Origin: Selaginella moellendorffii
Taxonomy: Eukaryota; Plantae; Lycopodiophyta
Length of the DNA stretch: 64,000 nt
Direction: 5' to 3'
Assembly (NCBI RefSeq): GCF_000143415.4
Contig: NW_003314275.1
Coordinates: 2,546,908 to 2,610,907, forward strand
Shown: positions 8,742 to 39,378 of the stretch, in pieces
Layout of the letters: the number at the start of each line of letters is the position of its first letter
Numbering within the stretch: position 1 is the first letter of the stretch
Program-made: the position numbers and the translations under genes
The notes under the pieces: model-generated
Told to the model about the DNA's origin: nothing
Databases searched by the model: none
Seen by the model: only the letters and a program-made list of their open reading frames with translations

Positions 8742-11439
8742 GCGCCCGCCCAGTGTGAATAGGGAGCTCCAGTCATAAATCAAATAAATCAAAAAGTTTT
8801 ATTAAAGGATTAAAAGGAGGAAAAAATGGGAGAAAAGGGATATACCTCAAGCCGGCGGTTGATGCCTCGCCTAGATCAACGCCTGTGATGCGGGCGCACT
8901 GGAATTAGGTGGCTGCGTGTGTGCGACCAAACGAACGAGCGATACGAGAGCACCGATGCGCGGAGAAACCCCAGTGGCTTCCTAGGGCATTATATACCCA
9001 CCACCTTTTGTTTGGATCCTATCGAAGCTCTCTCTGTCGCGATGGCCTCTTCCTCCACGGTACCAAAACTTAACAATGTGGCGATGCTTGCAGTGTCAGT
9101 CTAGGATCCACACACAGCCAAATTTCTCTTGCGTCTCTCGAATTTTTTTTGTGGCGATGGGGGTTGACTCGTGTAACTACGGTATTGCTCGCCGCCAGTA
9201 CGCTTAGTCACTGGCGCGATGTGGCAACGCACGCAGCCGGGTGTCTATACGCAAATTCATCTCGGCTAGCTAGAGTATTGTGGCAGTGTCGTTTGGTTTG
9301 ATCGAGTGGGGATGCTTGACCAGTGGGTTTGATTGATACTAGCCCAGTGAAACACTCCATGTGACAAAACCATGTGGGGCACAACGACGCCACCTCCCTT
9401 ATCTATCCACAACAACAATTATACATGGTGTTTTAAACACCGTATATGTGCGTGTCTTGCGGTTGAGAGCCGGCCCTGGACACAAATGTAGGTGGCGTTC
9501 TCTTGCGGGTCAAGATTCAACAGCCAGCTAGGTCAAGCTCCCGCGGAATCGAACCCGGCAACGAATATGATCCCGGCCAATGGCACCCGTGCCGTACGTG
9601 GATGCGCGTGCGCACGCAAAACACGAGGTGGGTTGGGTACGGCATTTACCTCGCGCCCCCATGGATAAGATCGAACTGGCGAAGGAGCACAGTAACTTAA
9701 GGTTAAAACCTTATCCACAACAAGAGAAGGCCACAAACATGACATTGCGTTTCGTGGAGTCGTGGTGACAGTTAGGTGACAACCGAGGACAGCAGCCTTT
9801 TGGAGTGCTGTCACTAGATTCGCATCCCGCGAATATTCCCATCGTCACGTCAAACTTAATGCCCCCAGTTCCATCCTTCTTCAAGAAAGAAGAAAAGACC
9901 TAATTTATTCGAGAAGAAGCTCTCTGTTCTTTGGATCTGAAACTCGAATGGAAAACGACGACTGCGAGATCTAACTTGAATCTTGTGACTTGTAAACAAA
10001 TCGGAGCGCAGGGCGGATTAGTTTACACCTATCCTGTCCCGGAAGATGGAAGAAATCTTATATAAAACGTGTGATACTCCGTACGCTCGGGTACTGGGCA
10101 TCCGTACGTCCGGGCTGGACTGTACATGACATGTTTGGGCATTTTCGCTGTCCCCGGCGACAAAAAATGGAATCAAGTGTACAAATACGTTGCCAGCACT
10201 TGCGTGGTTGTGACGTGGTTGGCATTCCCTCGAATCGGCAAATGCCGGATCAAAGGCATCTGCTATACGTGGTCCGATCTGCCTGTTCTAAGTAACGTTC
10301 TTGTCACTCACACACTTCCACACACAAGAACACAATCAGACAAAGAGGTGGACAAAGGTGGCATCTCCACCCGGGGTCACACTTGGAGACAATGGATTGG
10401 GATTGATGGATAGGTGGATGTCGCAAAGAGAATTTTGTTTAGTCAAACCTCCACATCTAACCTTCAAAGATACGGAGGCTATAGTTTCGATCACCCGCAA
10501 TGTCTCAGACAATTTCTCAACGGGGTTCCATCCGCAATCTTTGAAATTTCCATTAATCCAATCTAACAATGGTCTAAGTAGTGGAAAGTTGGTTGTGTCC
10601 TGTCTGGATAACGGCCGTACACCGACGTGGTGCCACGTCCGCCCGGCCATCGCCCGCCACAAGCTCCCTCCTACGCGTCCACGTCACGCGCGTCCCGAGG
10701 CCCATGTCATATAACAAAAGCGCGAAAAGCCGCCCACCACCAGCACATTGGCCGGGCTCGATCCCCGGATCTTTCCCCTCAGCCCCTGGCACAAGGTGGT
10801 CCCGGGTTCCAGTCCTCTCCACTGCTCCCACATCGCTTTCGCGATTCGGTTCCTTTGTCGATATCGCCAAGCAGCCTGGCACTACAATAGCAAGAAAAAG
10901 GAAGAAAAGATGCTCGCCCGCGACGAACAGCATCCCTAGATAGCGACCATTTGGGGCGAGAAGCTTAAAAGTCGCCATTAGCCTCGTGTCTATCGTCAGC
11001 ATATATACACAGCGTTGCCTTCTCTTTAATGGACGGACATGGCGAGCTTTGTGTGGCCAGGGAGGGAACCCTAGACCAGTCCAAGAATCACGGACCCAAG
11101 CTTTGGACCTCATGGAATGGAGTGGAGCCCTAGATATCAAGTAGTCCAAGAATCACGCTAACTTGTGAAACCCTTGGAACGCGTGATATTCTCTCTTTTC
11201 TTCTTCTTCTTTCTACCACGCGCGGGCGCTGGCCTTGGGCGTGTGTGGGGGTTTTTTTGAGTAACGGGATTCCTGTATGGAATCCTTGGCCAAGCGCCAC
11301 AAACGCTTGTGGGGGGACTTTAACGCCTTACTCGCGTTCGCGCGTAAACTAGCAGATATTTCAAAATTTTGAATTTGAACTTTAAGGCTAGCGAATTTTT
11401 GAATTTGAATTTTAGGGTTCATGTGTCAAGAGGGATTTG

Positions 11440-13599
11440 ATGCTGCGCGCGCGTCGCCATCGCGCCACGATCACTCGCCAACATCGAAAGGGATTTGCTT
11501 CCAGCAGCGGCACTGGTCACGACAGCGACATTAGAGGATTGCGAGCCGCGATTGAGGAGCTGGAGCTCTGCGATCGTGTGCGCTGCGACGAGGTCTACGC
11601 CCGCCTCCTCCGGCAGTGCGCGGATTTGAGGGCGCTGCCCGAGACGCGGCGGATCGACGCGCACATCTCCGCCTCGGCAGAGTTCCATGGGAATCGATTC
11701 CTGGGAAATCTCCTCGTCAAGGCGTATGGCAATTGCGGCAGCGTGGACGATGCTAGATCGGCGTTTGCGGGCATCCGGCAGACGAAGAACAGCCACACTT
11801 GGAACTTGCTCCTGGCCGCGTATGCCAAGAACGGGCATCGCGAGAAATGCGTGGGTCTCTTCGAGCAAATCCCAGAGAAGAACGTTATGTCGTGGAATTT
11901 CCTGATCCAGGCGCACTCGAGCAAGGACGAGCTTGTAAATGCGCGAAAGGTTCTTGAGAAAATGCCCCACCGCAACATGATCTCCTTCACGATTCTGATA
12001 TCCTGTCACACCCAGTACGGGGATTTGGATCTCGCGAGAGATTTCTTCGATCAGATGCCCGAAAAGGACACCGTCGCATGGAATTCGATGCTCCAGGCAT
12101 ACGTCCGTCACCGAGATATTGTCTCCGCGAAAGAGATGTTCGACGCCATCGCTCCCAAGACCCTCGTCACGCTCACGACAATGATTCGCGCGTATGCCCA
12201 GACAGGGCATATCGATCATGCCCGAGAGATCTTTGATACGATCCATCACCCGGACGCCATAGCCTGGAACATCATGATACAGGGCTACTGCGACGCTGGC
12301 TCAATCGATCAAGCAAGGATTTTGTTCCAGAGAATGCCAGATCCAGATGCCTTTACTTGCAGCTTGATGCTATCGGGATTTGCCGCGATGGGGCTTGTGG
12401 ATGATGCAAAAGCTCTCTTTGATAGATCGCGGCAGGAGGACCCAGTCGCGTGGAATTCTATGATCACGGCCTACGCTCACAGTGGCCGTGTTGAAGAAGC
12501 CAAATTTCTCTTCGATCAGCGCCCGGATCATCACAAGCACGTCGCGAGCTCCTGGAACGCGATGATCGCCGCGTATGCCGAAAACGGGCATCTAGTCGAG
12601 GCAGCGGGCTTGCTGGAAGCAATGCCACCGGCGATCCAGAACGAGATCTCTTGGAACACTCTTCTCTGCGGATTCGTGAGCCGCGATATGTTGGATCAGG
12701 CCAAGGATGTCTTCGAGAGGATCCCAATCAAGTCGGTGCTCGCCGCCAACACCATGCTCGCGGCGTATGCCCTCACCGGGCAGCACATCAAGGAGGCGAT
12801 GAGCGTGTTCACCACGATCGATGATCCGGATCCCGTGTCGTGGGCGTCGATCGTGGGTGCCCACGCGCGAGCTGGGCAGGGAAGAGAAGCGATCCGTCGA
12901 TTCCAGCTCATGGATCTGGCCGGGGTGAGGCCGAAAGAGGCAGCCCTCACTGCTGTTCTTGACGCCTGCTCCTCGATCTCCTCCTCGGGGCTGCGATTTG
13001 GCCGCATCATCCACGGCGAGATTGAGGACGATCGAGGGCTGGCGCTGGGGAATTCGCTGCTCAACATGTATGGGAAATGCGGTGCTAGCATCGAGGAGGC
13101 CGAGATGGTCTTTGCAAGAATGGCGACGAGGAACACCGTGTCGTGGAACGTGATGCTCGCGGGCTATGCACAAAACGGGCATAGCTCGCAAGTTCTCGAG
13201 CTCTTCGCGGTGATGATCCTGGAAGGCGAGGCCCCGCCCAGCAAGATCACTCTCGTCTCGGTCCTCTCGGCTTGCAGCCACGCCGGGCTCCTCCACGACG
13301 GCCTCGCTTGCTTCGCATCGATCCGCGACGACTTTGGCATCGGTGCGCATGAGGATCACTACAAATGCGTCGTGGATCTTCTGGGCCGATCAGGCCAGCT
13401 CGAGGCGGCCGAGAGTTTCATCCAGAGCTTGCCGTTCAAGGCCGACAGTGGAGTGTGGACAGCGCTCTTGAGCGCTTGTAGCAGCCAAGGAAGCGTCCAT
13501 GGAGGAGCTCGAGCGGCGCTAAGCATGGTGGATACTGAGCCAGGGGAATCGTCACTGCCATACGTGATGCTCTCCAACATCCATGCCACTACTAATTGA
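11440..13599 (+). CDS. Intronless PLS-class PPR protein, E-type without DYW
   Basis: About 720-aa ORF with tandem SWNxMIxAYA repeats, VSVLSACSHAG, HYKCVVDLLGRSG, VWTALLSAC, ending PYVMLSNIH. Confidence 0.93.
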   Translation: MLRARRHRATITRQHRKGFASSSGTGHDSDIRGLRAAIEELELCDRVRCDEVYARLLRQCADLRALPETRRIDAHISASAEFHGNRFLGNLLVKAYGNCGSVDDARSAFAGIRQTKNSHTWNLLLAAYAKNGHREKCVGLFEQIPEKNVMSWNFLIQAHSSKDELVNARKVLEKMPHRNMISFTILISCHTQYGDLDLARDFFDQMPEKDTVAWNSMLQAYVRHRDIVSAKEMFDAIAPKTLVTLTTMIRAYAQTGHIDHAREIFDTIHHPDAIAWNIMIQGYCDAGSIDQARILFQRMPDPDAFTCSLMLSGFAAMGLVDDAKALFDRSRQEDPVAWNSMITAYAHSGRVEEAKFLFDQRPDHHKHVASSWNAMIAAYAENGHLVEAAGLLEAMPPAIQNEISWNTLLCGFVSRDMLDQAKDVFERIPIKSVLAANTMLAAYALTGQHIKEAMSVFTTIDDPDPVSWASIVGAHARAGQGREAIRRFQLMDLAGVRPKEAALTAVLDACSSISSSGLRFGRIIHGEIEDDRGLALGNSLLNMYGKCGASIEEAEMVFARMATRNTVSWNVMLAGYAQNGHSSQVLELFAVMILEGEAPPSKITLVSVLSACSHAGLLHDGLACFASIRDDFGIGAHEDHYKCVVDLLGRSGQLEAAESFIQSLPFKADSGVWTALLSACSSQGSVHGGARAALSMVDTEPGESSLPYVMLSNIHATTN

Positions 13600-13969: not shown

Positions 13970-15515
13970 TTAAAACAGTCCAATTCTCGGCGATCCGTAA
14001 TGTTTCTGGCTCCTGATGAGTTCTTGAGTTCGTTCCATGATCTGCAAGAAAAATGTTCTTGTGAGTTCCTGAGACAATGAAAGAGAAAACCAAGATTAAT
14101 GCAGTTAACTTGCCTTCACAGCGATTATTGACGGAGTAAGTTCACATATGTCCTTGGCATTCATCTCATTCGCAATCACTGCATGCAAAGGATGTGAGCG
14201 ATAAGAAAACCATCTTTGTTAGAAAACTTACTCTTTAGGCACACGGAAACGTCAGCGTTCTTGTAAGCCATGCCTCTCTCCTCGTAAAGCTTTGTTAATC
14301 GAGCTAACGTCTGCAAATAACAATGACCAGAAAATTAAAATATAAGACAAAAGATAAGAATGCTTTCAAGCTATACCTGTTCATGAGCAAACTCTCGCTG
14401 CGGCTCTCCCAGAAGTGGTCTCTTCTCCGTCCCAGCAGCCACAACACGCTTGGCTAATGCGTCCAATGGAACATCCAGATAGACAGTGATCCCATGTCTC
14501 ATATAACCCCTGACAACGACACCACAAGGCGTTCTTATCCTCTTCTCTCGATTATAGAGAGAAAACGACTATCTTATCTTACCAGTTTTGTGGTCTCACC
14601 ACAGCACCTCCTCCTGTCGCTACTACCAATCGATACATCCCAGATAATTGGCTTAAAACCTCACTCTACATTATCCACAAAACAATAGAAAAAACATCAG
14701 ACACTGAAGATAGACACGTTTCAAGGCCACAAGACAGTGGGGATCACTCACCTCAGCATCGCGAAAGCCTTCCTCGTTGCTTTGCTTGAAGATCTGAGCT
14801 ACACTGGCGCCGCCGGCGGCCTGCTCAACAAGCTTGTCACTGTTTCTCCACGAAGAAAGTCCATCAAGTGGTGCGACGAAGCAAATCGAAAGAAAAAAAC
14901 GAGATACACCAACCTGTCAAAGAAGTAGTACCCGAGCGCGTCCGACAAGTGCTTTCCCACAGTACTCTTTCCACTGCCCATCATCCCTGTGGACGAGAAA
15001 ACGAAGTTGTGTTAAAGAAAAAGAGAAAGAGAAAGGAGAACGAGAGAGAAAAGCGAAGTGGTACCAATTAGAAACAGGCACGTCCCTTTGAGGTCCCTGG
15101 CCAATTCCTTGCCTTTGCTCTGAGAATGTATGGTCGTCCACTTAGCATTAAGAGGAAAAGAAGAACACAAAAGGAACCTATGGATCGCACCTTTAGAGCT
15201 GTATCGACGCTGGTGGATTCTGTGGCTGCGAGAGAGAAATCGATCAGACGAAAAAAACGTGTTCTCGAAATTCGAGAGAAATTCTCGGCACATACCAGCT
15301 ACATTCGCGTTCTGCGAGCACAGCAGCACCACCGGGCGCCTGGCGCGATGATGAATCTGCGACGGATTCCTGCAAGAGACGAGATTGATGCGCGATTGCC
15401 TCCCAAAATGCAGCTCCTCACGAGAGAATCCCAGCCTCCGGAATCCATCGCCGCCGCGGAGCTCCACGAAATTCGAGGACGATGTCCCTGCCGAAGGCGC
15501 CAAGACGCAATCCAT
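13970..15515 (-). CDS. SK: Plastid shikimate kinase (copy 1)
   Basis: Transit peptide MDCVLAPS..., GMMGSGKSTVG, FFDSDKLVE, FRDAE, VVATGGGAVVRPQNW, ITVYLDVPLDALAKR, RPLL. Ends ...PRIGLF*. Confidence 0.93.
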
Positions 15516-15769: not shown

Positions 15770-18231
15770 ATGAGCTGGTGCGCTCGAGCTAGGGCGCCGG
15801 GCGGGCGCGCTCTCCTTTTGTCCTCGAGATTTCGCCGCTTCTACGCGTAAGTCCCTCCACATCCTTCTCGGGGCTGGAATTTCTCGTGTTTTTGCGCTAG
15901 AATGCTTGAATTTTCGAGATTTTTTTGCCTATGTAGCAATGCTCTCGAGGCTGGCTGGAGCTTGAAATGCCTCATTTTTGCTACTGATTTATTCCTTTCT
16001 CGTTCCTTTCAGCTCTGCGACAGCGCAGCCATCTGAAACAATCGATGATTTATCGCCGCAGCCTTCAGCTAGACCACCATGTAAGCTGGCAATTTTCTAC
16101 TCTTCTTGCGTTTGAATTTTGTAAAAAAAATTTTCTTGTTTCTTTTTTGTTCGTGCAGCAGACGATCTCTTGTCGGCTGAGGCACTCACTCCCGCGAAAG
16201 TCGTAGCTTTGTTGGATCGTCACATCGTCGGCCAAACCGGAGCCAAGCGTGCGGTTGCAGTGGCATTGCGTACGCGCTCGTCAGCCTTTGCTGCTGCCTG
16301 TTATCTGACTCCATAGGTGGTGCACTAGAATTTTCTCTTTCTTTTTTTTTCACTTCTTCTTTCATGCCTTCTTTTAGAAACTTGGTTGCTTTTTGCGTGT
16401 AAGTTTCTAGATTCTGTTGTACTGAAGTTCTTGAGCCGTCTGCACGCAGGAAATCGATGGCGGCGACACCGTATTCCTTCTCAATATCGAGAGGAGATTC
16501 TTCCCAAAAATATACTTATGATCGGACCAACTGGTTGCGGGAAAACGGAAATTGCGAGACGGTTGGCTAAAATGGCGGATGCTCCGTTTATAAAAGTGAG
16601 GAAGTGTTTTTATTCTTCGTTTGTTTTTAACTCATATTTTCTAACAGGTGGAAGCTACGAAATTTACAGAAGTTGGATTTCATGGCCGAGATGTGGACCA
16701 GATCATTCGGGACCTTGTTGAGAATGCTATATTACTGCAACGAGAAAAGGTGTTTTAAAACTCAACAAAGCGAGTTTTTTCAACTCTCTTCTTTCAGGTG
16801 CGAACCAGAATTTCAAAAGAGGTGGAGGAAGCTGTTGAGAACAGGATCCTGGACGCGTTGATCGGTTTGACCCTCGCTATTGAGGTTTTTGTTTTTGCGG
16901 CTTTTTGGTCTGTCTGTGGCTGAACATGTTTTAGCAGGAGGACAATGTGGATACGAGTTCATTGGAGACACTACGCAAGGCTTATAAGAAAGGGGAAATT
17001 GATAACCGCAAGCTAGTGCTGGACGTTCCCGAGGGAGGAAGAGTGCGCGTCCCTATTGAAGTCACAGGAGGTGGTCTTCCTATAAACGATCTTATTTTCA
17101 AGGTACTACGCCTCTGCATGAAAGGAATTGGTATTGACGTCTCGATTTCCTCTAGATAGAGAAAGCTTTGAAATCCCCGAAAGTCGAACGCCGTGAAGTA
17201 ACTGTCGCCGAGGCCAGACAAATGCTCTCGGAAATGGAAGTCGAAAAACACCTTCAGTCCGATCAGATCATCAAAGATGCAATACGTGTACACGCTAGTG
17301 TTTTTGGTCTCGTTTCCCTGGATGTTAATGGCTTCCACTTGCAGGCAACGGAGTCTGACGGCATTGTATTTATAGACGAGATCGACAAAATCGTTACAAC
17401 TAGCGAAGCCAGATTTGGAGCGGATGCAAGTGCGGAAGGTGTACAGCGGGACTTGCTTCCTATTATCGAAGGCAGGTAAATTATTACCACGTTGGTTTTC
17501 CTTCCGTGCTAAGCTGGTCCTCCTTTCAGCGTTGTAAACACGAGACACGGGAATGTGAACACCGATCACATTCTTTTCATTTGCAGTGGCGCCTTTCACT
17601 CTTGTAAGCCAAGTGACATGCTTGCTGAGCTACAAGGACGTCTGCCTATCCGTGTTGAACTGAAAGGTCTCACTCGCACGGTAAGTCGCGCTGGAAGTGT
17701 TGCAGCATCTCTACCATGCTAACAGCCATTCTTTCCAGGATTTGTACCGTATTCTAACCGAGCCTGAAATAAATATGATCAAGCAACAACAGCTTCTTAT
17801 GGCTACCGAAAGTGTGGAGCTTGTTTTCTCCGACGACGCCATAAAGGAACTAGCCAATGTTGCGGCTGAGGCAAGTGTTCTTGTGGGGATTTCTTAGCTT
17901 ACTCATTGCTGAAAAATAAAACACGTTACAGGTGAATACTTCTTTGGACAACATTGGTGCTCGGAGACTTCACACGGTAACGCATTTTCTTCCTCAATAG
18001 CGAAATGTTCCCACTGGTTTTGTTTGATCCAGGTAATTGAGAAGGTAGTAGAAGATATTAGCTTCAATGCTCCAGAAAGAGCTGGGCAAGCTTATCACAT
18101 TGACAAGCAAGTAAGTTTCATCGATCGCTTGACGAATTCATGGTTCTATTTGTTTCTTTCTTTCGCAGAAAGTAAGAGATGCTGTTGGAGAGCTCTTGAA
18201 GAAAACCGACTTATCAAAGTTTGTTCTCTAA
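15770..18231 (+). CDS. hslU: HslU (ClpY) AAA+ ATPase subunit of the HslUV protease, with probable mitochondrial presequence; about 13 introns
   Basis: [120 protein letters not shown]-terminal DLSKFVL*. Confidence 0.96.
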
Positions 18232-18801
18232 AGAGCACTCGCCCAGGTAACTGGCCACAGCCTCAACAGGAAGATTGGGCCCGGGCACAAGAAGCTCAAG
18301 GATCGCGCCATCCCTCGGTTGAAACCCATCTTCAGCTGAAAACCACTTGGCATCTCAGCATCCCAAAGAGGACATGATGAATCAGCTTGGTGGCGGCGGT
18401 ATTGAAACCATGCTGAGGCGCAAAAGTGTAGAATCCCGGTTGATCAACGCAAAAACCTTCACACAAAAAACAAGAAAACAAAGAAAAGAAGAGGAGTTGA
18501 TCCTGAAACCATCGTCTGGAAAACTTTCTTCGATTTGGATTTGGATATTTGCACGGAGATCTCCCTGAAGAAAATTTTGTCCAGCAACCAGAGGGTTACC
18601 AGAAGCAGCCTGGAATGGTTTGTCCCCTGAAGGCTCAAACAATCTCCTAAGGTTTCTCAGCTTCATTGGATTTTCCAGAAACGCTGCTGATCAAAATGTA
18701 TACCAGTATGAAAAGATGATGGTCCTTATTGCTTTATATATTGATGATTTGATCCTGGTCACAAAATGTCTTGCTTTTCTACAAATGATCTAAGAGTAGA
18801 T

Positions 18802-18929
18802 TGATCTCGGCAATATTAAGTTCTGTCTTGGTCTTAATACTGGGACAATTCATTGCTCACTCACAGTGCTGTGAGGGATGAATTGTCCCAATATTAAGAC
18901 CAAGACAAAACTTAATATTGCCGAGATCA
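18802..18929. repeat. Inverted repeat with 52-bp arms inside the copia remnant
   Basis: 18802-18853 is the reverse complement of 18878-18929 with 2 mismatches. The loop contains the inner palindrome ctcacag-tg-ctgtgag. Confidence 0.92.
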
Positions 18930-19342
18930 TCTGCTCAGCGCTATGAGGAAGGAATTCTGAAACGGTTTAATATGCATGACTGTATTCCAGTTTCCACTCC
19001 CATGGAACTTAATCTTCAGCTTTGCTCATCTCAGTCTCCGACCACTGAAGCTGAGCGCACATCCATAAGAGTATTTGGTATCGTGCACCAGTTGGAAGCC
19101 TTATTATCTGGTTATCTGTACCCGCCTTGGCGCTTAAATACTCTCCGTGTCCCAGATGAGTAATTCCAATTGCGAGGTTCTGATTGAGCCGGTGACAATG
19201 ATACAAGAAAATCCACATCTGATGCCTCAACTTTAATATGGAGGAGCAGGAAACAAAGCATCACAGCTCTGTCTTCTGCCGGCGTGCAAGGAAGCTGTCT
19301 GGCTTAGCTTGTTGCTCATAGAGATTGGACATTTTCCTCTCT

Positions 19343-19550
19343 AGCCAACGATGCTATTTTGTGACAACATCAACACTATTGCTCTTTCAGCTACATCTAA
19401 GTTTCATGACCGAACCAAGCACATCCAGCTCCATTATCTCCGGGTGTTATTCTCCTCCAATTCTGTTCGACCACTGAGCACCGGTCATGAATTTGGATGT
19501 AGCTGAAAGAGCAATAGCGCTAATATTGTCACAAAGTAGCATCGTTGGCT
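19343..19550. repeat. Inverted repeat with about 70-bp arms inside the copia RNaseH remnant
   Basis: agccaacgatgcta...ctattgctctttcagctacatc...tcatgaccg (19343-19412) versus cggtcatga...gatgtagctgaaagagcaatag...tagcatcgttggct (19482-19550). Confidence 0.9.
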
Positions 19551-19598
19551 GTTGGCTGGAGTCCACAATCTAAGCCAGACAATAGACTGATGAGCCAT

Positions 19599-19820
19599 GC
19601 CAATGAGTAGGCCTTGACCTAACTAACTTTCTTGTGACAATTCTCTAGCTTGCTTACTCAAATTAAAAACACTTACAGGTAAATACGCCTTTGGATAGCA
19701 TTGATTTGCTTGATCTAGTGGAAAATATTAGTTTCAATGCTCCAGAGAGAGATTATCACATTGACAAGCAAGCAAAGAAAAAAAAAGCGATTGTAGAGCT
19801 CTTGGGTTTATCGAAGTTAA
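19599..19820 (+). pseudogene. Degenerate duplicate of the hslU 3' end
   Basis: [18 protein letters not shown] matches hsl[22 protein letters not shown]. The flanking intron sequence (gcttactca...acttacaggt) also matches 17898-17933. Confidence 0.85.
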
Positions 19821-20010
19821 AAATTAAACTTGTGGCTTCCACTGCGCCACGTCGGAAAACGCCATCCTTTTGCAATTGGTCCATGTCAGCAAGATACTCA
19901 AGCAGTGATTGGTACACGTCAGCAGCCCTAAATACCTATCGGGATTTCATCACTCTTGTGGAGCTCTTCGAGAAACAAGAGCTACATTTTCTCGACGAAG
20001 CGCGGGCGCG

Positions 20011-21543
20011 ATGGCGGCAGCAATGTCGGCGGCGAGCGTCGGTAATGTAAAGGTGGGAGGATTTCTTGGCAGCTCCAGGGGATTCCAGGCGAATCGGGGC
20101 CGAAATATCGTGTTCTCCAGGAAGATCATGGCCAGCGCCACGAAAGAGGCCCCAAGAAAGGGCGCCAAGGAGGCGATGAAGGATACACTGCTGACGCCGC
20201 GCTTCTACACCACGGATTTCGACGAGATGGAGCAGCTCTTCAATACCGAGATCAACAAGAAGCTCAACATGGAGGAGTTCGAGGCGCTGGTGGCGGAATT
20301 CAAGGCCGACTATAACCAGACGCACTTCGTGAGAAATCCCGAGTTTAAGGCCGCCGCGGACAAGATCACGGGGCCGATGAGGAAGATCTTCGTGGAGTTC
20401 TTGGAGAGGTCGTGCACGGCCGAGTCTCAGGGTTTTTGCTCTACAAGGAGCTGGGAAGAAGGCTCAAGGTACTTTTTTTTCTTCTCTTCTCTCCTCTTTA
20501 CTACACTTCTTTTCTTTCTGCTCTTCTCTTTCTTGCAGAAAACAAATCCCGTGGTTGCGGAGATTTTTACGTTGATGTCACGGGATGAAGCACGGCATGC
20601 AGGGTAAGTTCTCAGTTACTCAGCTGGAAAAAAAGCATCGATCATTTCCTATNNNNNNNNNNNNNNNNNNNNNNNNNNNNNNNNNNNNNNNNNNNNNNNN
20701 NNNNNNNNNNNNNNNNNNNNNNNNNNNNNNNNNNNNNNNNNNNNNNNNNNNNCGACTTTAACTTGGCTCTGGATCTTGGATTTCTGACCAAAGCCCGGAA
20801 GTACACCTTCTTCAAGCCACAGTTCATCTTCTACGCGACGTATCTCTCGGAGAAGATCGGCTACTGGAGGTACATTACTATCTACAGGCACTTGAAGGCC
20901 AATCCGGACTACCAGCTTTACCCGATTTTCAAATACTTTGAGAACTGGTGCCAAGACGAGAACAGGCACGGCGACTTCTTCTCGGCGTTGCTGAAAGCCC
21001 AGCCTCAGTTCTTGAACGACTGGAAGGCCAAACTCTGGGCTCGCTTCTTCTGTCTCTCGGTAAAGCAAACCTTTGGCTCTTCTTGGAATTTTTAGATGCT
21101 CATGCTTCCGCTCTTGCTCTTCCAGGTGTACGTGACAATGTACCTAAATGACTGCCAAAGAACTGCCTTTTACGAAGGAATAGGCCTCGACACTAAAGAT
21201 TTCGACATGCATGTCATCATCGAGGTATTTTAAAGTGAGATGAGAATAGGAACTCACGATCGTTTGTTTTCTCTGACAGACAAACAAGACAACAGCACGA
21301 ATCTTTCCGGCCGTGTTGGATGTGGAGAACCCCGCGTTCAAGGAGAAGCTGGATGAGCTAGTGGTGCTCAACCAGAAACTTATAGCTCTCGGTGACTCTA
21401 CCACTCCAGCTCCTCTGAAGACGCTGCAGAGGCTACCTTTGATTGCCGGAATGGTGTCTGGAATACTGAGCTTGTACCTGATGACTCCAGTCGAGTCTGG
21501 GTCGCTTGATTGTGTCGATTTTGAGCCGCAAGTTGTCTATTAA
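20011..21543 (+). CDS. CHL27: Mg-protoporphyrin IX monomethyl ester oxidative cyclase; spans an assembly gap and has an apparent 1-bp deletion
   Basis: [73 protein letters not shown]. Frameshift near 20425. Confidence 0.95.
20653..20752. other. Assembly gap (100 N)
   Basis: Run of N. Confidence 1.
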
Positions 21544-25328: not shown

Positions 25329-25465
25329 AGAGCACCCATCAAATTATTCTTGGCATATCCAATAATGGCCGTTGCATTTTTGCAATAATGGCCGTTAGAT
25401 GTGAGAGATCCAGCGGTTGAGATTAAGTGAGACTAAGAAAACTCTTTTACCCCTTTGAGAATGTA

Positions 25466-28400
25466 ATGCCATGGCTCCTCCGCATTCGCAATCTATGCAC
25501 TCTCGTCTCCGGCGATGCGGTCGGCGATCGCGCCCGCGATCGCGATGTCCAGCTCCTCGTCTCGCAGATCCGAGCTTGCGGCATGGCGGGGAGCCTGGCG
25601 CGGGGCAAGAGCATCCACGCCCACATCCTCCACACCCGGCCGGAGCTCTCGCGGGACCGATACCTCGCCAATTTCCTCATCCAGATGTATGGGCGATGCG
25701 GCAGCGTGGAGGACGCGCGCTCCGCCTTCGATCGCATCCAAGAACCCAACGTCTTTTCCTGGGGCGTCTTGATCGTGGCATATGCCCACAATGGGCATAT
25801 GCGCGAGGCGAAGAGATCGTTTGATTCCTCGCCCCAGCGCAACGTTTTTCTCTGGAACTCGACTATCTCGGGGTTCGCACAGTGCGGCCACATCCAGGAA
25901 TCGCGAGCAATCTTTGAAAGGATCCCGGCGCGCGATGCTTGCTCGTGGAACTCGGTCGTCCAGGCGTATGCCCAGATCGGGGATCTTGCCCGGGCGAGCG
26001 AGCTGCTGGATCGAATGCCGCAAAAGGATCTCATTTCTTGCAATGCGATGATCGCGGCCTACGCCCATGGAGGAGAAGTCTGGCGATCAAAAGAGGTTTT
26101 TGATGTGATGGAGAGGAGGGAAGTGGTGTCGTGGAACAGCCTCATGTCTGGGTTTGCACAGAACAAGTATTACAAGGAAGGAAAACTCGTGTTTGATCTC
26201 ATGCCCGCGTGGAGCATCGTTTCGTGGACGGCTCTGATCCAGTTCTTTGCCAGGAACGGGAATCTCGAGGAATCAAAATATACTTTCGATAGAATGCCCG
26301 AGAGGAATCAAACTTCGTGGAATGCAGTTATGTCGGCGTATGCGCAGAACGGGTGCTTGGAATATGCTCTAAAGATTCTCGAGAAGATGCCCGAGCAAGA
26401 CGTGGTGTCCAAGAACACGCAGTTGTCAGTATATGCCCAATCGGGGCATCTAGAGAGAGTAAAAAGGCTTTTTGATTCAATGGATTGCGATAACCCTCTC
26501 ACGCTAAGCACAATTCTTCACGCGTACGGAGACGCACGTAACTTTGATGCTATGAAGAAAATATTTGAGAAGAGGTCGTACAGGAATCGAATTACGTGGA
26601 CAGCCATGGTGACGGCATACGCCTCAAATGGGCATATCCCGGAATCGAAGAGAATGTTCGACAAGATGCCCGAGCATGGAATCCTCGCTTGTAATTCCAT
26701 GCTGGCTGCTTATTCTCAGGAAGGTCATCTCAAAGAAGCCAAGGAGACATTTGATAGAATGCGCGAGCACAATGTGGTTTCGTGGACGAGCATGGTTCAA
26801 GCCTACGCTCAAAACAAGCACTTGGACGAGGCAAAAGCCACTTTCGATCAAATGCCCGACAAGGATTCCATCTCTTGGACAAACATGATCACGGCTTACA
26901 CGCAGTGTGGTTGCCTGGACGAAGCTAAAGCAATGTTTGAGGATATGAGAAACCGGGGGATTTACTCGTGGACGGCCATGCTCACTGGCTATGCTCAAAG
27001 CTCCAACTTGAGTGTTGCGAGGAGAGTTTTCGATCGAGTTCCACAGCGAAATGTTGTGACTTGGAACGCGATGATCAGTGCGTACTCGCAGGGTGGTCAT
27101 GTTGCTGATTCTCGTCTGCTGTTCGAGCAAATGGTGGATCGCAACATCGTGTCTTGGAACGCATTGATCTCTGGATATGCGCAAAATGGCTTCGTAGCCG
27201 AATCGAGGAAGGTTTTTGAGCTCATGCCCGAGCAGGACATGGTAACTTGGTCGAGCATGGTGGCGGCTTACGGCCAAAGTGGTCATATCGAGGAGGCCGA
27301 GCAAGTGTTTCATCGCCTCCCGGAGCACGACACCATCTCTCTCACGACCATGGTTGCTGCTTACGGCCAAAACCTGTGCCTCGGCAAAGCAAAATGTCTT
27401 TTTGATGGGATTCCCAGGCAGGACTTGATCGCTTGCAACGCGATGATCGCTGCCTACACCCAGAACGGCTGCCTGGAGCAAGCAAAATCCATGTTTGATC
27501 GCATGACCGTGCTGAGCTCCTTCACCTGGAACGCTATAATCTCGGCTTACGCTCACTCGGGCCAAGGCAAGGCCGCCATCGAGCTCTTCAAGCAGATGTG
27601 TCTTGGAGGCGAGCAAATGGACGAGATTTGCTTCGTGAGCGTCCTCACGGCATGTAGCCGAGTCGGGCTCCTCGGCGAGGGGCTGAAGTATTTCCTCGTC
27701 ATGCGCGGCGACTACAAACTTAAGCCGGCTGGCGAGCACTACTGCTGCATGGTCGACGTTCTTGGAAGATCCGGGCTCTTAGAAGAGGCCGAGGAGCTTA
27801 TCTACGAAATGCCTTTCCTTCCAAACGTTGTGGCATGGGCGACTCTGCTGGGAGCTTGCAAGATCTATCGAGACGTGAAGCGAGCCGAGAGAGCTGTGGA
27901 TAGATACTCGGAGCTCGATCCAGATAGCATCACTCCGTTCGTGCTGCTGGCCAACATTTACGCTGCTGCCGGCATGGAGGCCGAGGAAGCGAGCGTGAGA
28001 AAGAAGATCAGGGACAAGAAGGCGAAGAACTTTAGAAATCCCGGGTGGCAGAAGGTTCCCGGGATAAGTTTGATCGAGGTGGACAACCGGGTGCACAGAT
28101 TCATAGCGGGCGATAACGAGCATCCCAGGATCGAGGAGATTCGCAGCGAGCTCGAGAAACTTCACTGCGCGATGAAAGAAGCTGGTTATGTTCCAGACAC
28201 GCGGGAAGTTCTTCACGATGTTGACGAAGAACACAAAGAGGGGATTTTGAGTCACCACAGCGAGAAGCTGGCCATTGCGTTTGGGCTCATGTCGTTGGAT
28301 GATCGTTGCAAAGAGCCAGTTCGAGTTGTCAAGAACTTGCGAGTGTGCCTGGATTGTCACACCGCTACCAAGTTTATCTCCAAGATCACGGGAAGGAGGA

Positions 28401-28471
28401 TCATTGTCCGTGATGCAAACCGGTTCCACGAGTTTGACAACGGGACATGCTCGTGCCAAGATTTTTGGTAG
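25466..28471 (+). CDS. PLS-E-DYW PPR protein (organellar C-to-U RNA editing factor)
   Basis: About 1000-aa intronless ORF with many PPR motifs, PG box KVPGISLIEV, GYVPDT, HSEKLA (HxE), KNLRVCLDCH (CxxC), terminal CSCQDFW. Confidence 0.96.
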   Translation: MPWLLRIRNLCTLVSGDAVGDRARDRDVQLLVSQIRACGMAGSLARGKSIHAHILHTRPELSRDRYLANFLIQMYGRCGSVEDARSAFDRIQEPNVFSWGVLIVAYAHNGHMREAKRSFDSSPQRNVFLWNSTISGFAQCGHIQESRAIFERIPARDACSWNSVVQAYAQIGDLARASELLDRMPQKDLISCNAMIAAYAHGGEVWRSKEVFDVMERREVVSWNSLMSGFAQNKYYKEGKLVFDLMPAWSIVSWTALIQFFARNGNLEESKYTFDRMPERNQTSWNAVMSAYAQNGCLEYALKILEKMPEQDVVSKNTQLSVYAQSGHLERVKRLFDSMDCDNPLTLSTILHAYGDARNFDAMKKIFEKRSYRNRITWTAMVTAYASNGHIPESKRMFDKMPEHGILACNSMLAAYSQEGHLKEAKETFDRMREHNVVSWTSMVQAYAQNKHLDEAKATFDQMPDKDSISWTNMITAYTQCGCLDEAKAMFEDMRNRGIYSWTAMLTGYAQSSNLSVARRVFDRVPQRNVVTWNAMISAYSQGGHVADSRLLFEQMVDRNIVSWNALISGYAQNGFVAESRKVFELMPEQDMVTWSSMVAAYGQSGHIEEAEQVFHRLPEHDTISLTTMVAAYGQNLCLGKAKCLFDGIPRQDLIACNAMIAAYTQNGCLEQAKSMFDRMTVLSSFTWNAIISAYAHSGQGKAAIELFKQMCLGGEQMDEICFVSVLTACSRVGLLGEGLKYFLVMRGDYKLKPAGEHYCCMVDVLGRSGLLEEAEELIYEMPFLPNVVAWATLLGACKIYRDVKRAERAVDRYSELDPDSITPFVLLANIYAAAGMEAEEASVRKKIRDKKAKNFRNPGWQKVPGISLIEVDNRVHRFIAGDNEHPRIEEIRSELEKLHCAMKEAGYVPDTREVLHDVDEEHKEGILSHHSEKLAIAFGLMSLDDRCKEPVRVVKNLRVCLDCHTATKFISKITGRRIIVRDANRFHEFDNGTCSCQDFW

Positions 28472-32327: not shown

Positions 32328-33740
32328 TCAAGAGCTCGTGCACACTCTGGATAGAAGCACGAACGCTTCTGCATTTCCCGGGTCAAGCTCCAGCATTTGC
32401 TTCCCAGCGACGCCACCATAGCGTCCAACTTGGTGCACGGAGCTAGCTCCCAGAAGTGCCCTCCACACGGGTCCGTGAGCCTCGAACGGCATGGTGACGC
32501 TCAGCTCCTCCGCCCGGTCCAGCTCTCCAGCTCTCGCAAGCAAGCCCACCATCGCGGAGTAGTGCTCCGGCCGAGCACTCAATCCAAAGTCACCACTCAG
32601 CGACGCAAAGAGCTGCCAGCCCCGGTGGACGAGACCGCCATAGCCGCAAGCGATAAGAGCCGCCAGGAAACACACATCGTTGCTGTCAAGCCCACTGCAA
32701 TTCAGCTCCTGGAAGCTCTCGAGTCCCTGCCTCCAGGCCCCGGCCAGGACGCTAGATTCGATCAAGCAGCTCCAAGAGACCGTGCTCCGCTCGGGCATTC
32801 GGTCGAAAAAGAGTTTCGTCAAGCTCAAGCTTCCGGAAGTGACGAACGCATGCAGAAGGCCCGTCCAGGCGACGACATCCCGCTCCGGCATGGCTCGAAA
32901 CGTTTCCAGCGCTTCCTCGAGGAACCCATTCCGGGCATAGGCGTGAAGCATCGACGTCCATGACTGGAGCGTCAGCTCGGGCATTTGATCGAACAAGCTC
33001 TTGGCTTCCTCAAGATGCCCGCTCAAAGCATAGGCTTGCAGCATTGTCGTCCACGACGCAACGTTATACTCCGGGAAGCTGTCAAAGATTTGCTTGGATC
33101 TGGCAAGATGCCCAAGCTCGGCATAGCAGTGGAGAAGAGCGTTCCAAGATATCAAGCTGGTCTCCGGCATCTTCTCAAAAATTTCATCACAGTTTTGGAG
33201 ATTTCCAAGACGTCCGTACATCGCGATCACTGTGTTCCACGAGACCACATCGTGCTCTGGCATGCAAACGAAGATCTCTTCGGCGAGTCTGATATGCCCA
33301 GATTCGGCATGAGCTGCAAGAAATGCGTTCCAGGAAACCATGTCAAGGACTGGCATCTCCTCTTGGAAGATTTTTGCTCCTTTGCAAATCCCAGCTCTTT
33401 CGAGAAACGAAGTGAGTATGATGTTCCACAAGACAATGCTATGCTCTGGTGCGAACTTGAGAAGCGAGTAAGCTCTCTCTAGATGCCCATTCCTGGCATA
33501 TGCCGAGAGAAGGATACCCCAAGAGAAAACGTTGGGTTGGCTGATTTGATCAAAGACTTGTCTTGCCAGCTCCAGGCTCCCGCACCTTCCGTACGCATCC
33601 ACAAGTAAATTAGCCAAAAACCTGTCCTGCGTGAGTGAGCTACTGGTGATTTGCTTGTGAATTTTGGAAATGTCTGCTATTGCAACGCAATTTTGGAGAT
33701 GATCCGCGAGGAAAATCCTCGCTTGCTCACTCGAGCACAT
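32328..33740 (-). CDS. PLS-class PPR protein, E-type without DYW
   Basis: 470-aa ORF with DRFLANLLVDAYGRCGS, repeated VSWN/SWT motifs, HYSAMVGLLARAG, VWRALLGA. Confidence 0.9.
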   Translation of the reverse strand: MCSSEQARIFLADHLQNCVAIADISKIHKQITSSSLTQDRFLANLLVDAYGRCGSLELARQVFDQISQPNVFSWGILLSAYARNGHLERAYSLLKFAPEHSIVLWNIILTSFLERAGICKGAKIFQEEMPVLDMVSWNAFLAAHAESGHIRLAEEIFVCMPEHDVVSWNTVIAMYGRLGNLQNCDEIFEKMPETSLISWNALLHCYAELGHLARSKQIFDSFPEYNVASWTTMLQAYALSGHLEEAKSLFDQMPELTLQSWTSMLHAYARNGFLEEALETFRAMPERDVVAWTGLLHAFVTSGSLSLTKLFFDRMPERSTVSWSCLIESSVLAGAWRQGLESFQELNCSGLDSNDVCFLAALIACGYGGLVHRGWQLFASLSGDFGLSARPEHYSAMVGLLARAGELDRAEELSVTMPFEAHGPVWRALLGASSVHQVGRYGGVAGKQMLELDPGNAEAFVLLSRVCTSS

Positions 33741-36456: not shown

Positions 36457-39378
36457 CTAGTAGGCCGCGGCTCCATAATTCCCTCGTCCAGATCCCGAGG
36501 CTTGGTTTGGACAATCTCTGGCCCAGTGACCGCCTTGGCCACACTTGAAACAACTATTTCCCGAGGCACCGCCTCCACCACCGCCGTAAGATCCTGTATT
36601 GCCACGACCGCCACCACTGCCATATCCACCACCACCACCGCTACCATATCCACCACCGCCACCACCACCGCTACCATATCCACCACCGCCACCACCACCG
36701 CTACCATATCCACCACCACCACCGCCGCCGCCGCTACCATATCCCCCACCGTATCCGCCGGTATAGCCACCTGAGTTGTTGCCCCCGAAACCACCGGCGT
36801 TTCCACTGAATCCGCCACCTCCTGTGTTACCACCGCCGCTGTTGCCACTGAATCCGCCACCATAGCCACCACTGGTGGTACCACCGCCAGTGTTGGCACT
36901 GAATCCGCCACCGCCACCATAGCCACTACCAGAGTTGGCACCAAAGCCACTTCTACCACCGCCAGAGTTGCCGACGTAGCCACTGTATCCTCCTCCGCTA
37001 CTTCCACCACCGCCAGCATTTCCGCCGTAGCCACCTCCACCAGCGTATCCACTTGCACTCCCGCCATATCCTCCGCCTCCAGTGGTAGCGCGGTACCCAG
37101 CGTCCGCTCCAGACATACCGCTCATCGTTTGCGCCGAGAAGCTCGCCGTGTTGTTGATAGGCTCGCCTCTCCTGAGCTTCCCGATCGCGTCAATCATGTA
37201 CTTGCTCTCCGCGACGAAATCCAACTTCTCGGCTCGCTGGATATTTACTTTGACCCGCTGCTCGTCGTTGAAACTTTCTTCCTTGATCCTGACCTTGAAA
37301 TGGTGCTGGGTGAACTGGATGCTGGCAATGTGGTCAAGGAACCGGCCGTTGTCCTCCTGTTTCCACATAAAGAGGTCCTTGGCTTTCACGCCCAAGAGTT
37401 CTTCCGCGGCCTCCTGGAAGCCAGTGAGCCAGGTAGCGCCCGTGTGATCCATCACTTGAATGGAGAGCATATATCTGTAGTCGCACTCGGGGACGGTTCG
37501 GTCACACCGCTCACACCGCCAAGTTCCGTCTCCATTGTTCGTCACCTTTTTGCTGCACTGCCTGTCTCCAATTTGCAGCGGGCATGCTGTGTAGCAGAAG
37601 CTGTCCGTCTTTATAAAGTGGATGGTCGCTCTTATAGTGACGAAGTCTGGCTTCTCCGATCTGCCAAGTCCCTCGTCTTTAATCTGCGACACAGTCTTCC
37701 GGTTCTCCGTCCGACCACCACCGCCCGCTCCTTCCCTGGAAATAGACTGCGCCTGTGCGTGCCTACCCTCGCGTTCAAACCACAACTGCAGGGAACGTGC
37801 TTCTGGATGATCGGGATTGATTTGGAACCGCGTCGAGGAAATAGTCCCCAGGCTCTTTCCGCTGAAATCGCTTACTCGACCTGCTTTGATTGCCAGTATG
37901 GGACTTTGGCCTGAATCACATAGCTCCTGGAGGTGCTGTCCTTCTTGAGTACAAAAGTTGCCCCACATTGTGATCTCGACGCTCTTGCCAGACCTGTCTC
38001 TAAGCTGCAGCGTCCTCCGTTGTGTCTCTGTACCGTTTTTTCTCATTATAGTCGTTGTTTGGTTGACCCCGACCACCACTCCAATGGCGTCAACCATGGC
38101 ATTGTTCGGCAGATTCTCGATCTCACTGACCTGCTTGAAGTCAAACACTTGCTGCGGAACTGACGAGTCCTCAGGACACGGGTCGAGCACTGAGTCCTTC
38201 TCGAACATAATCTCCCAGTCGTTCTTCAAGTGATTGAACTGCTTCTGTGCCGCTCGGAGGGATCCTTTGGAGACCATATACAACCGACCGACCTGAGCAC
38301 GCTCGTAAAACTCGTCCGCAACGTTGTTGAAGCAAGTAACTCTGATCTCACCACCCTCGGCATCCAGAAGATCGAAGCTAAACACCCTGCCATCACCTCG
38401 GGCGTTGTTGAAGCGACGGAGGTCGCTCTTAGAAGTGATCCTCGCTTTGATCGTCCAGCGGCCGTGATACGGGTTCAAAGCTGCTATAGGAACGAGTCCA
38501 GGCGGCCCCTCGTTCCTTGCAATAGGCCCTCTATTCGTGTAAGTTGGCGGCGGTCCATATGGAGGATTCGGAGCATAAGACCCGATAGACTCTGCCGGTC
38601 TTCCACCGTACGCAACTGTTTCTCTTCTAGCCTCTGCTGGCCTTCCATAAGGACTCACAGCGGGAGTTGCTTGTCCTCCAAAAGAACCCGGCTCTGCTGG
38701 CCTTCCATAAGGACTCACAGCGGGAGTTGCTTGTCCTCCAAAAGAACCCGGCTCTGGTGTTCTTCCACCGATAGAGCTCCCCTCTGCTGCTCTTCCACCT
38801 AGAGAGTTTGTCTCTGTAGGCCTTCCACCGAAAGAGGTAGCCTCTGCCTGTCTTCCCCCGAAAGAGCTCACTTCCGTTGGCCTTCCACCGAAGGAGCTCA
38901 CCTCTGCTGGTCTTCCACCGTAGGAGCTGACAGCGGACGCTGTTTGGTTCCCACTAGGACCAGGAGGATCAACTACCGCTCCAGGAGGTTGATCGCTCAT
39001 CTCTGCATTTGAAACAAGAACATCCAAGTTGAGGACAATCACTATCCTGTAAAAAAAGGAAAAGAAGCTCGCACAAGAAGACAAGGATAGAAAAAGAGTA
39101 GCTTACTTTCTATCTTTCACGGTGTTGCAAATGTACTCTTGAAGCTTCACGATGCTGCTCTTCATCAAGGTTCCATTCTTGACGACCTCGTTGAGCTGCG
39201 TGGCGAGCATGGCCTGCTGCACAGCGGTCCCATCCGACAGCACCAAGCGATAGCGCTCTTGGACGTTCTGATTCGACCCAATCTGCTTCACGTCCAGTAC
39301 CTGGACGATGGGCCGGAGCTCCAAGTCCCCTCCCAGGAGCGCCACAATCGCATTGGGGGTGAGAGACGGCTGCGCCAT
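36457..39378 (-). CDS. RPA1: Replication protein A 70-kDa subunit, RPA1C/E-type with Gly-rich tail and CCHC knuckle (2 exons)
   Basis: ERYRLVLSDG...MLATQLN, PIAALNPYHGRWTIKARITSKS, CYTACP...CSKKV...CERC, YRYML, CFKCGQGGHWARDC. Confidence 0.96.
38634..38757. repeat. 60-bp tandem duplication within the RPA1 linker
   Basis: Lines 38641 and 38701 are nearly identical and encode EPGSFGGQATPAVSPYGRPA twice. Confidence 0.92.

Follow-up and report, generated by a model that had tools for sequence, protein, structure and literature searches.

The hslU gene and its transcripts

The 64,000-nt stretch of Selaginella moellendorffii DNA analyzed in this work (contig NW_003314275.1, hereafter the window) includes a nuclear gene, hslU, also known as clpY, whose product belongs to the family of HslU, the AAA+ unfoldase of the HslUV protease. 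The exon model was obtained by joining consecutive HslU-like short open reading frames (ORFs) under GT-AG rules, and an exon-by-exon profile scan was colinear with it (Table 1). The product consists of 495 amino acids in its major form and 496 in a minor form. Twelve introns are of the GT-AG class and one, intron 11 (17871-17931, donor GCAAGT), is GC-AG; introns 4 to 13 are 48 to 61 nt long each. A preliminary description of the window had claimed a complete HslU with about 13 spliceosomal introns, and exactly that number was found.

Table 1. Coordinates of the hslU gene, its exons and its 3' untranslated region in the window
Feature	Coordinates	Strand	Remarks
hslU (clpY) gene	15770..18231	+	ATG (15770) to the end of TAA (18231); 14 exons, 13 introns
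Exon 1	15770..15846	+	N-terminus resembling a presequence; codons 1-25 plus two bases of codon 26
Exon 2	16013..16080	+	Remainder of the N-terminal extension; junctions supported by transcript contigs
Exon 3	16159..16269	+	Conserved HslU core begins; profile position 1 is residue 58
Exon 4	16450..16595	+	Walker A GPTGCGKT, 16524-16547
Exon 5	16648..16749	+	Pore-1 loop GFHG, 16675-16686
Exon 6	16798..16884	+	I-domain, first part (I-domain, about residues 164-296, is 16735-17287)
Exon 7	16938..17102	+	I-domain; alternative NAGNAG acceptor at 16935
Exon 8	17156..17287	+	I-domain, last part
Exon 9	17345..17475	+	Walker B, 17363-17389
Exon 10	17530..17680	+	Sensor-1 FICSGAF; KPSD (E. coli Pro315 position); arginine finger LQGRLPIRV, 17630-17656
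Exon 11	17739..17870	+	Small AAA+ subdomain; GC-AG intron directly 3'
Exon 12	17932..17976	+	Sensor-2 GARRL, 17956-17970
Exon 13	18033..18110	+	Junctions supported by transcript contigs
Exon 14	18169..18231	+	C-terminal tail DLSKFVL (18208-18228) and stop codon
3' untranslated region	18232 to at least 18316	+	Contigs of three runs (X2, X3, X7) end at 18316

Each of 20 public runs, from ten studies, contained 27-42% of the 31-mers sampled from the hslU region, a share that by our estimate is about that expected for exonic words alone. In contigs of four runs, each from a different study, all 13 introns were cleanly skipped at the predicted boundaries, which supplies the splice support that the preliminary description had named as a check. 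The first junction (15846/16013) was present in three runs and the GC-AG intron 11 was removed in all four. One contig of 1577 nt covers the whole mRNA, from a few bases 5' of the ATG to 85 nt 3' of the stop codon. Because the fully spliced form recurs across independent studies the contigs are considered to be RNA-derived, the library type of the runs being unrecorded. A NAGNAG tandem acceptor is located at 16933-16938: the joint 16884/16938 was found in four runs and the joint 16884/16935 in one, at lower depth. Use of the acceptor at 16935 adds one Gln and generates the minor form, which is presumably the RefSeq isoform X1. The transcript differs from the window at five single bases of the coding sequence, all of them synonymous, and the coding sequence thus shows signs of purifying selection.

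Within the 3' untranslated region, about 53 nt (18252-18304) are shared with another contig in all four runs, the flanks being unrelated; this may reflect a short repeat, or a related transcript that originates at another locus. Word depth was raised between 18175 and 18388.

Identity and relatives of the encoded protein

The spliced 495-amino acid translation is identical at every residue to 'uncharacterized protein LOC9632693 isoform X2 [Selaginella moellendorffii]' (P0401), and the gene is therefore already in RefSeq, though unnamed. Residues 58-495 matched the NCBIfam hslU equivalog TIGR00390 in one stretch over the complete profile (positions 1-441 of 441), with a score of 525.7 bits (cut-off, 362.45). 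The two ClpX equivalogs remained below their cut-offs (NF003745, 215.4 against 359 bits; TIGR00382, 188.6 against 370.75 bits). Pfam matches were AAA_2, AAA and ClpB_D2-small, and the amino acid identity was 55-56% to alphaproteobacterial HslU (over about 430 amino acids) and 49% to the E. coli protein.

Judged by its sequence, the window protein is an ortholog of HslU, complete in length and in its catalytic and pore motifs. The Walker A (residues 111-118) and Walker B (residues 303-311) motifs, sensor-1, the arginine finger and the sensor-2 Arg make up a complete AAA+ set, in which K117, D307-E308, R377 and R445 align with K63, D256-E257, R325 and R393 of E. coli HslU. The pore loop GFHG (residues 144-147) aligns with G90-Y91-V92-G93, so that Phe takes the place of Tyr91 and His that of Val92. 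Also present are the equivalents of E. coli Pro315 (in KPSD, residues 366-369) and Phe441, the latter within the HslV-docking tail DLSKFVL (residues 489-495; DLSRFIL in E. coli). Intact Walker motifs, a GFHG loop and this tail had been read from the DNA in the preliminary description, and all of them hold when aligned to E. coli HslU. GFHG and the Cys of Walker A are invariant in 18 of 18 streptophyte and 11 of 11 chlorophyte rows of the alignment, whereas bacteria have GYVG and Val; GFHG is the pore-loop form typical of eukaryotes. The remaining motifs and the tail are invariant or nearly so across the 18 streptophytes.

The protein is colinear from end to end with bacterial HslU (E. coli structures 1E94, 1DO0 and 1G4B, and the alphaproteobacterial proteins), with which it also shares the insertion of the I-domain in the AAA+ module. 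This domain (approximately residues 164-296, between Walker A and Walker B) aligned through the I-domain part of TIGR00390 and, in comparison with alphaproteobacterial HslU, shows one insertion, of 7 residues, and one deletion, of 6. Apart from the pore loop and the Walker A Cys, the differences from the bacterial system are the nuclear location of the gene, its 13 introns and a 54-residue N-terminal extension. An AlphaFold2 model made with 40 homologs had a mean predicted local distance difference test (pLDDT) score of 77.9 and a predicted template modeling score of 0.75; it showed long helices across residues 150-301, with low confidence at 234-245, and its 50 best Protein Data Bank matches were without exception HslU/ClpY chains, aligned over about 440 columns. 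Plant mitochondrial ClpX, the partner of ClpP2, is likewise a class II single-ring AAA+ unfoldase of the HCLR clade with AAA_2 and ClpB_D2-small domains. However, where ClpX has a zinc-binding N-domain and an IGF loop, the Selaginella protein has the I-domain and a C-terminal tail through which HslU docks.

Relatives were collected with a profile that combined a sparsely sampled backbone (P0007) with well-conserved exon pieces of the window and of L081, a Joint Genome Institute (JGI) metagenome contig with a basal-streptophyte hslU gene. The matches listed reach down to 376 bits, the fern match having 377 bits. Among them were orthologs from charophytes (Chara, Spirogloea, Mesotaenium and Closterium), liverworts (Marchantia, where the protein is named HslU, Riccia and Calypogeia), mosses (Sphagnum, Ceratodon and Physcomitrium, the last with two clearly distinct proteins) and vascular plants (the lycophyte Diphasiastrum, the fern Ceratopteris and the gymnosperm Ginkgo). 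The preliminary description had presented HslU as something that this plant keeps; the gene is real, but with orthologs from charophytes to Ginkgo among the matches listed it is not peculiar to Selaginella. An exhaustive search of representative proteins with the only piece that spans two exons free of stops (exon 8, intron 8 and exon 9) returned mostly fragments; HslUs of eukaryotic appearance, extended at length at their N-termini, were numerous among the matches. The closest full-length match in that search was a prasinophyte protein (P0011), and a word search with it returned chlorophytes and marine picoalgae only. Two proteins of 495 amino acids (P0251 and P0266) have the length of the window protein but are not this protein, and L082 (P0057), considered as a possible close relative, was rejected, since it belongs to a GC-rich green alga whose introns are at other positions.

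Selaginella has a second intact hslU gene, LOC9652181 (L084:3001-5465; GL377571.1, GCA_000143415.2), coding for 509 amino acids that are 71% identical to the window HslU and end in the same DLSKFVL tail. All 13 of its introns match those of the window gene in place and phase, ten exactly and three in variable regions, and for this reason LOC9652181 is considered an old DNA-level duplicate. SELMODRAFT_439468 (489 amino acids) is an older model of this gene and has no Walker A match. The two genes appear to result from a lineage-specific duplication, as suggested by their 71% identity and their grouping with the other lycophyte (support 98/91, see below). Two HslU paralogs are found in many eukaryotes (PMC4106860). 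Both Selaginella proteins have the Phe tail and the Pro315 equivalent that mark bacterial HslU and 'HslU1', instead of the Tyr/Thr pair seen in HslU2 of kinetoplastids (PMC4106860).

Prokaryotes were scanned with the 50-residue pattern of exon 10, using one genome per species (185,579 species). The best 80 loci had 71-82% identity and were nearly all from Alphaproteobacteria; in these loci hslV is generally located directly upstream of hslU, while the Selaginella hslU does not adjoin an hslV gene. A maximum likelihood tree of 54 rows (LG+C20+F+G4; supports are ultrafast bootstrap/Shimodaira-Hasegawa-like approximate likelihood ratio test) separated bacteria from eukaryotes with 100/99. The Selaginella protein was found in the eukaryotic clade, together with the mitochondrial HslUs of Chlamydomonas (HSLU1 and HSLU2, which occur beside HSLV1), Trypanosoma, Leishmania, Plasmodium, Andalucia and Diplonema. 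With the algal and protist proteins it has the N-terminal extension in common, and with those of chlorophytes GFHG and GPTGCGKT; it differs in coming from a vascular land plant. Within the eukaryotes, the HslUs of streptophytes (100/98), land plants (99/95) and lycophytes (98/91) formed clades, and the branching mirrored plant phylogeny through charophytes, liverworts, mosses, lycophytes, the fern and Ginkgo. Quick trees agreed with the maximum likelihood tree. Of the 13 intron positions, the gene on L081 has at least six in common with the window gene, and possibly eight; introns 3, 8 and 11 are absent from it. Degenerate additional copies of exons 10 and 11 were observed within long introns of the L081 gene (L081:7059-7532 and 9178-9477). 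On the strength of tree and intron positions, the Selaginella HslU is vertically inherited within the green lineage, and its gene is an old nuclear one of the endosymbiotic type.

These results bear on two other explanations of the locus. A bacterial contaminant in the assembly, or a gene recently acquired from a bacterium by horizontal transfer, could be considered in view of a family that is typically bacterial and of the 55% identity to alphaproteobacterial HslU. Nevertheless, the 13 spliceosomal introns are removed in RNA, the flanking genes (PPR-DYW, shikimate kinase and CHL27-like) are those of a plant, and the gene is nested in the streptophytes with intron positions that other streptophyte genes share; splicing, the plant-like tree and the common intron positions together exclude both possibilities, whose probability we regard as negligible. 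The preliminary description had been right in this respect, and the comparison with bacterial HslU that it had proposed placed the protein in the eukaryotic, organelle-type clade, with Alphaproteobacteria as the closest bacterial matches. That the gene instead encodes a ClpX-type or other AAA+ ATPase mislabeled as HslU, or is a decaying pseudogene, is scarcely credible. It is true that ClpX is the known class II Clp ATPase of plant mitochondria and that it has the AAA_2 domain in common with HslU; however, the family-model scores, by which the HslU model was passed and both ClpX models failed, refute the mislabeling, an outcome that the preliminary description had made decisive for its own claim. 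A pseudogene is at odds with the intact reading frame, the expressed mRNA and the transcript differences in the coding sequence, which are all synonymous.

The surrounding DNA

Upstream of hslU, a shikimate kinase gene with a GSGKST P-loop exon was named from its translation (about 14370-15000, - strand), and downstream, on the same basis, the first exon of a Mg-protoporphyrin monomethyl ester cyclase gene (CHL27/CRD1-like, 19909-20607, + strand). Three intronless pentatricopeptide repeat (PPR) genes are located at 11437-13599 (+), 25427-28471 (+, with E and DYW deaminase domains) and 32328-33740 (-), and are typical of the expansion that RNA-editing genes have undergone in Selaginella. A long ORF at 36457-39084 (-) is RPA70-like, with OB folds and a Rep_fac-A_C domain, and has a CCHC zinc knuckle at its end.

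The region 18600-19600 includes Copia-like reverse transcriptase fragments (such as ...ALYIDDLILV...), and a short inverted repeat at about 18801-18930 codes for an identical peptide on both strands. Exon 13, with pieces of its flanks, recurs as a degenerate copy some 100 bp long beside retrotransposon debris, 1.5 kb downstream of hslU (about 19690-19790, + strand); the copy has a 9-bp deletion.

Targeting, partner and possible role

The 54-residue N-terminal extension is Arg-rich and has no counterpart in bacterial HslUs. An Arg-rich presequence free of acidic residues had been proposed earlier, and the sequence reads as stated: residues 1-33 include six Arg and no Asp or Glu. The extension includes R-F-Y|A-S at residues 23-27, which we take to fit the -3R cleavage pattern of plant mitochondrial presequences. 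Residues 1-48 are disordered in the AlphaFold2 model (pLDDT below 50). Taken together, the extension looks like a mitochondrial presequence. Among homologs, Chlamydomonas HSLU1, HSLU2 and HSLV1 have been treated as mitochondrial (bioRxiv 10.64898/2026.04.02.716084), and the HslVU of T. brucei is mitochondrial (PMC2277460).

The best explanation of these data, and one that we consider probable, is that the window includes a functional nuclear gene for an organelle-type HslU (ClpY), an AAA+ unfoldase of the mitochondrial HslUV type. By homology with bacterial HslUV and with the mitochondrial HslVU of trypanosomes (PMC2277460, PMC4106860, PMC6429459), the following mode of action can be proposed. 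The N-terminal extension would direct import into the mitochondrial matrix and would then be cleaved off, and the mature protein would form an ATP-driven hexameric ring. Substrates would be recognized and captured by the inserted I-domain, and gripped and threaded by the aromatic pore loop (Phe145). Upon ATP binding, the DLSKFVL tails would insert between the subunits of a dodecameric HslV threonine protease and open it, and HslU would feed the unfolded chains into HslV.

Several points weigh against this proposal. The predicted mitochondrial localization has as its basis the presequence-like features and the Chlamydomonas precedent, and a supplement of the moss N-terminome had no HslU entry. 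The alphaproteobacterial affinity is biased, as it comes from a 50-residue scan and from a tree whose bacteria were drawn from that scan. In the pore loop, GFHG replaces GYVG, with His at the position of Val92. As to the partner, for which the preliminary description had predicted an unlinked hslV gene, tblastn with HslV gave no match in the 64-kb window, nor in L081 or L082, and in a word search of the database all 120 matches listed were of bacterial type; the query of this search was an over-long, stop-free alphaproteobacterial reading frame, which shifts the length filter to proteins of precursor length. One HslV match labeled EukProt, with 79% identity, was taken as contamination.

Two further alternatives concern the compartment and the partner. 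The HslU of the window or its paralog LOC9652181 could go to plastids, or to both organelles, and not to mitochondria alone, given that in plants the N-terminal extensions of organellar proteins often are ambiguous or serve two organelles and that the two Selaginella paralogs differ in their N-termini. We consider this improbable, since the extension is Arg-rich and not Ser/Thr-rich, has no acidic residue in its first 33 amino acids and includes the R-F-Y|A-S end, the closest bacterial matches are alphaproteobacterial and not cyanobacterial, and the algal and protist homologs have been reported as mitochondrial. An HslU that acts without a canonical HslV, either by itself, as an unfoldase or chaperone of the mitochondrion, or by handing its substrates to a different partner, is a possibility to be kept in mind but an unlikely one. 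It has a parallel in kinetoplastids, where one of the two HslU paralogs has been set apart from those HslUs that assemble into functional HslVU complexes (PMC4106860). On the other hand, 18 streptophytes have retained the Pro315 equivalent and the tail that docks on HslV through hundreds of millions of years, Chlamydomonas retains HSLV1 beside its HSLUs, and a canonical hslV split by introns would be easy to miss in a first-stage reading. The conservation is not decisive: the tail argues weakly for a retained HslV partner, because free HslU likewise keeps it buried (PMC4106860). A more specific version, in which land plants below the angiosperms keep HslU without canonical HslV, the unfoldase acting alone or serving divergent proteasome-beta-like domains, seems to us very improbable; if true, Selaginella would have a rewired organellar 'proteasome'.

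HslUV has been stated not to be encoded by plants, or ClpY to be bacterial (PMC7050145, PMC7412383), while a 2006 survey, in the passage of PMC2277460 where it is cited, included 'plantae' among the holders of HslUV. In the searchable literature we found no description of a land-plant HslUV, of a distribution up to Ginkgo or of the two Selaginella paralogs. The protein is a member of a known family, the eukaryotic organelle-type HslU, ordinary but under-recognized, and does not represent a new kind of machine. The notion that plants lack HslUV holds, as far as HslU is concerned, for at most a part of the plant kingdom, and the distribution points to a late loss of HslU toward the flowering plants, the absence from angiosperms being taken from the literature (PMC7050145, PMC7412383). 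These results suggest that a bacterial-type unfoldase may belong to the organellar proteostasis set of non-flowering plants, and Marchantia and Physcomitrium are tractable models for the role of HslUV in the plant mitochondrion.

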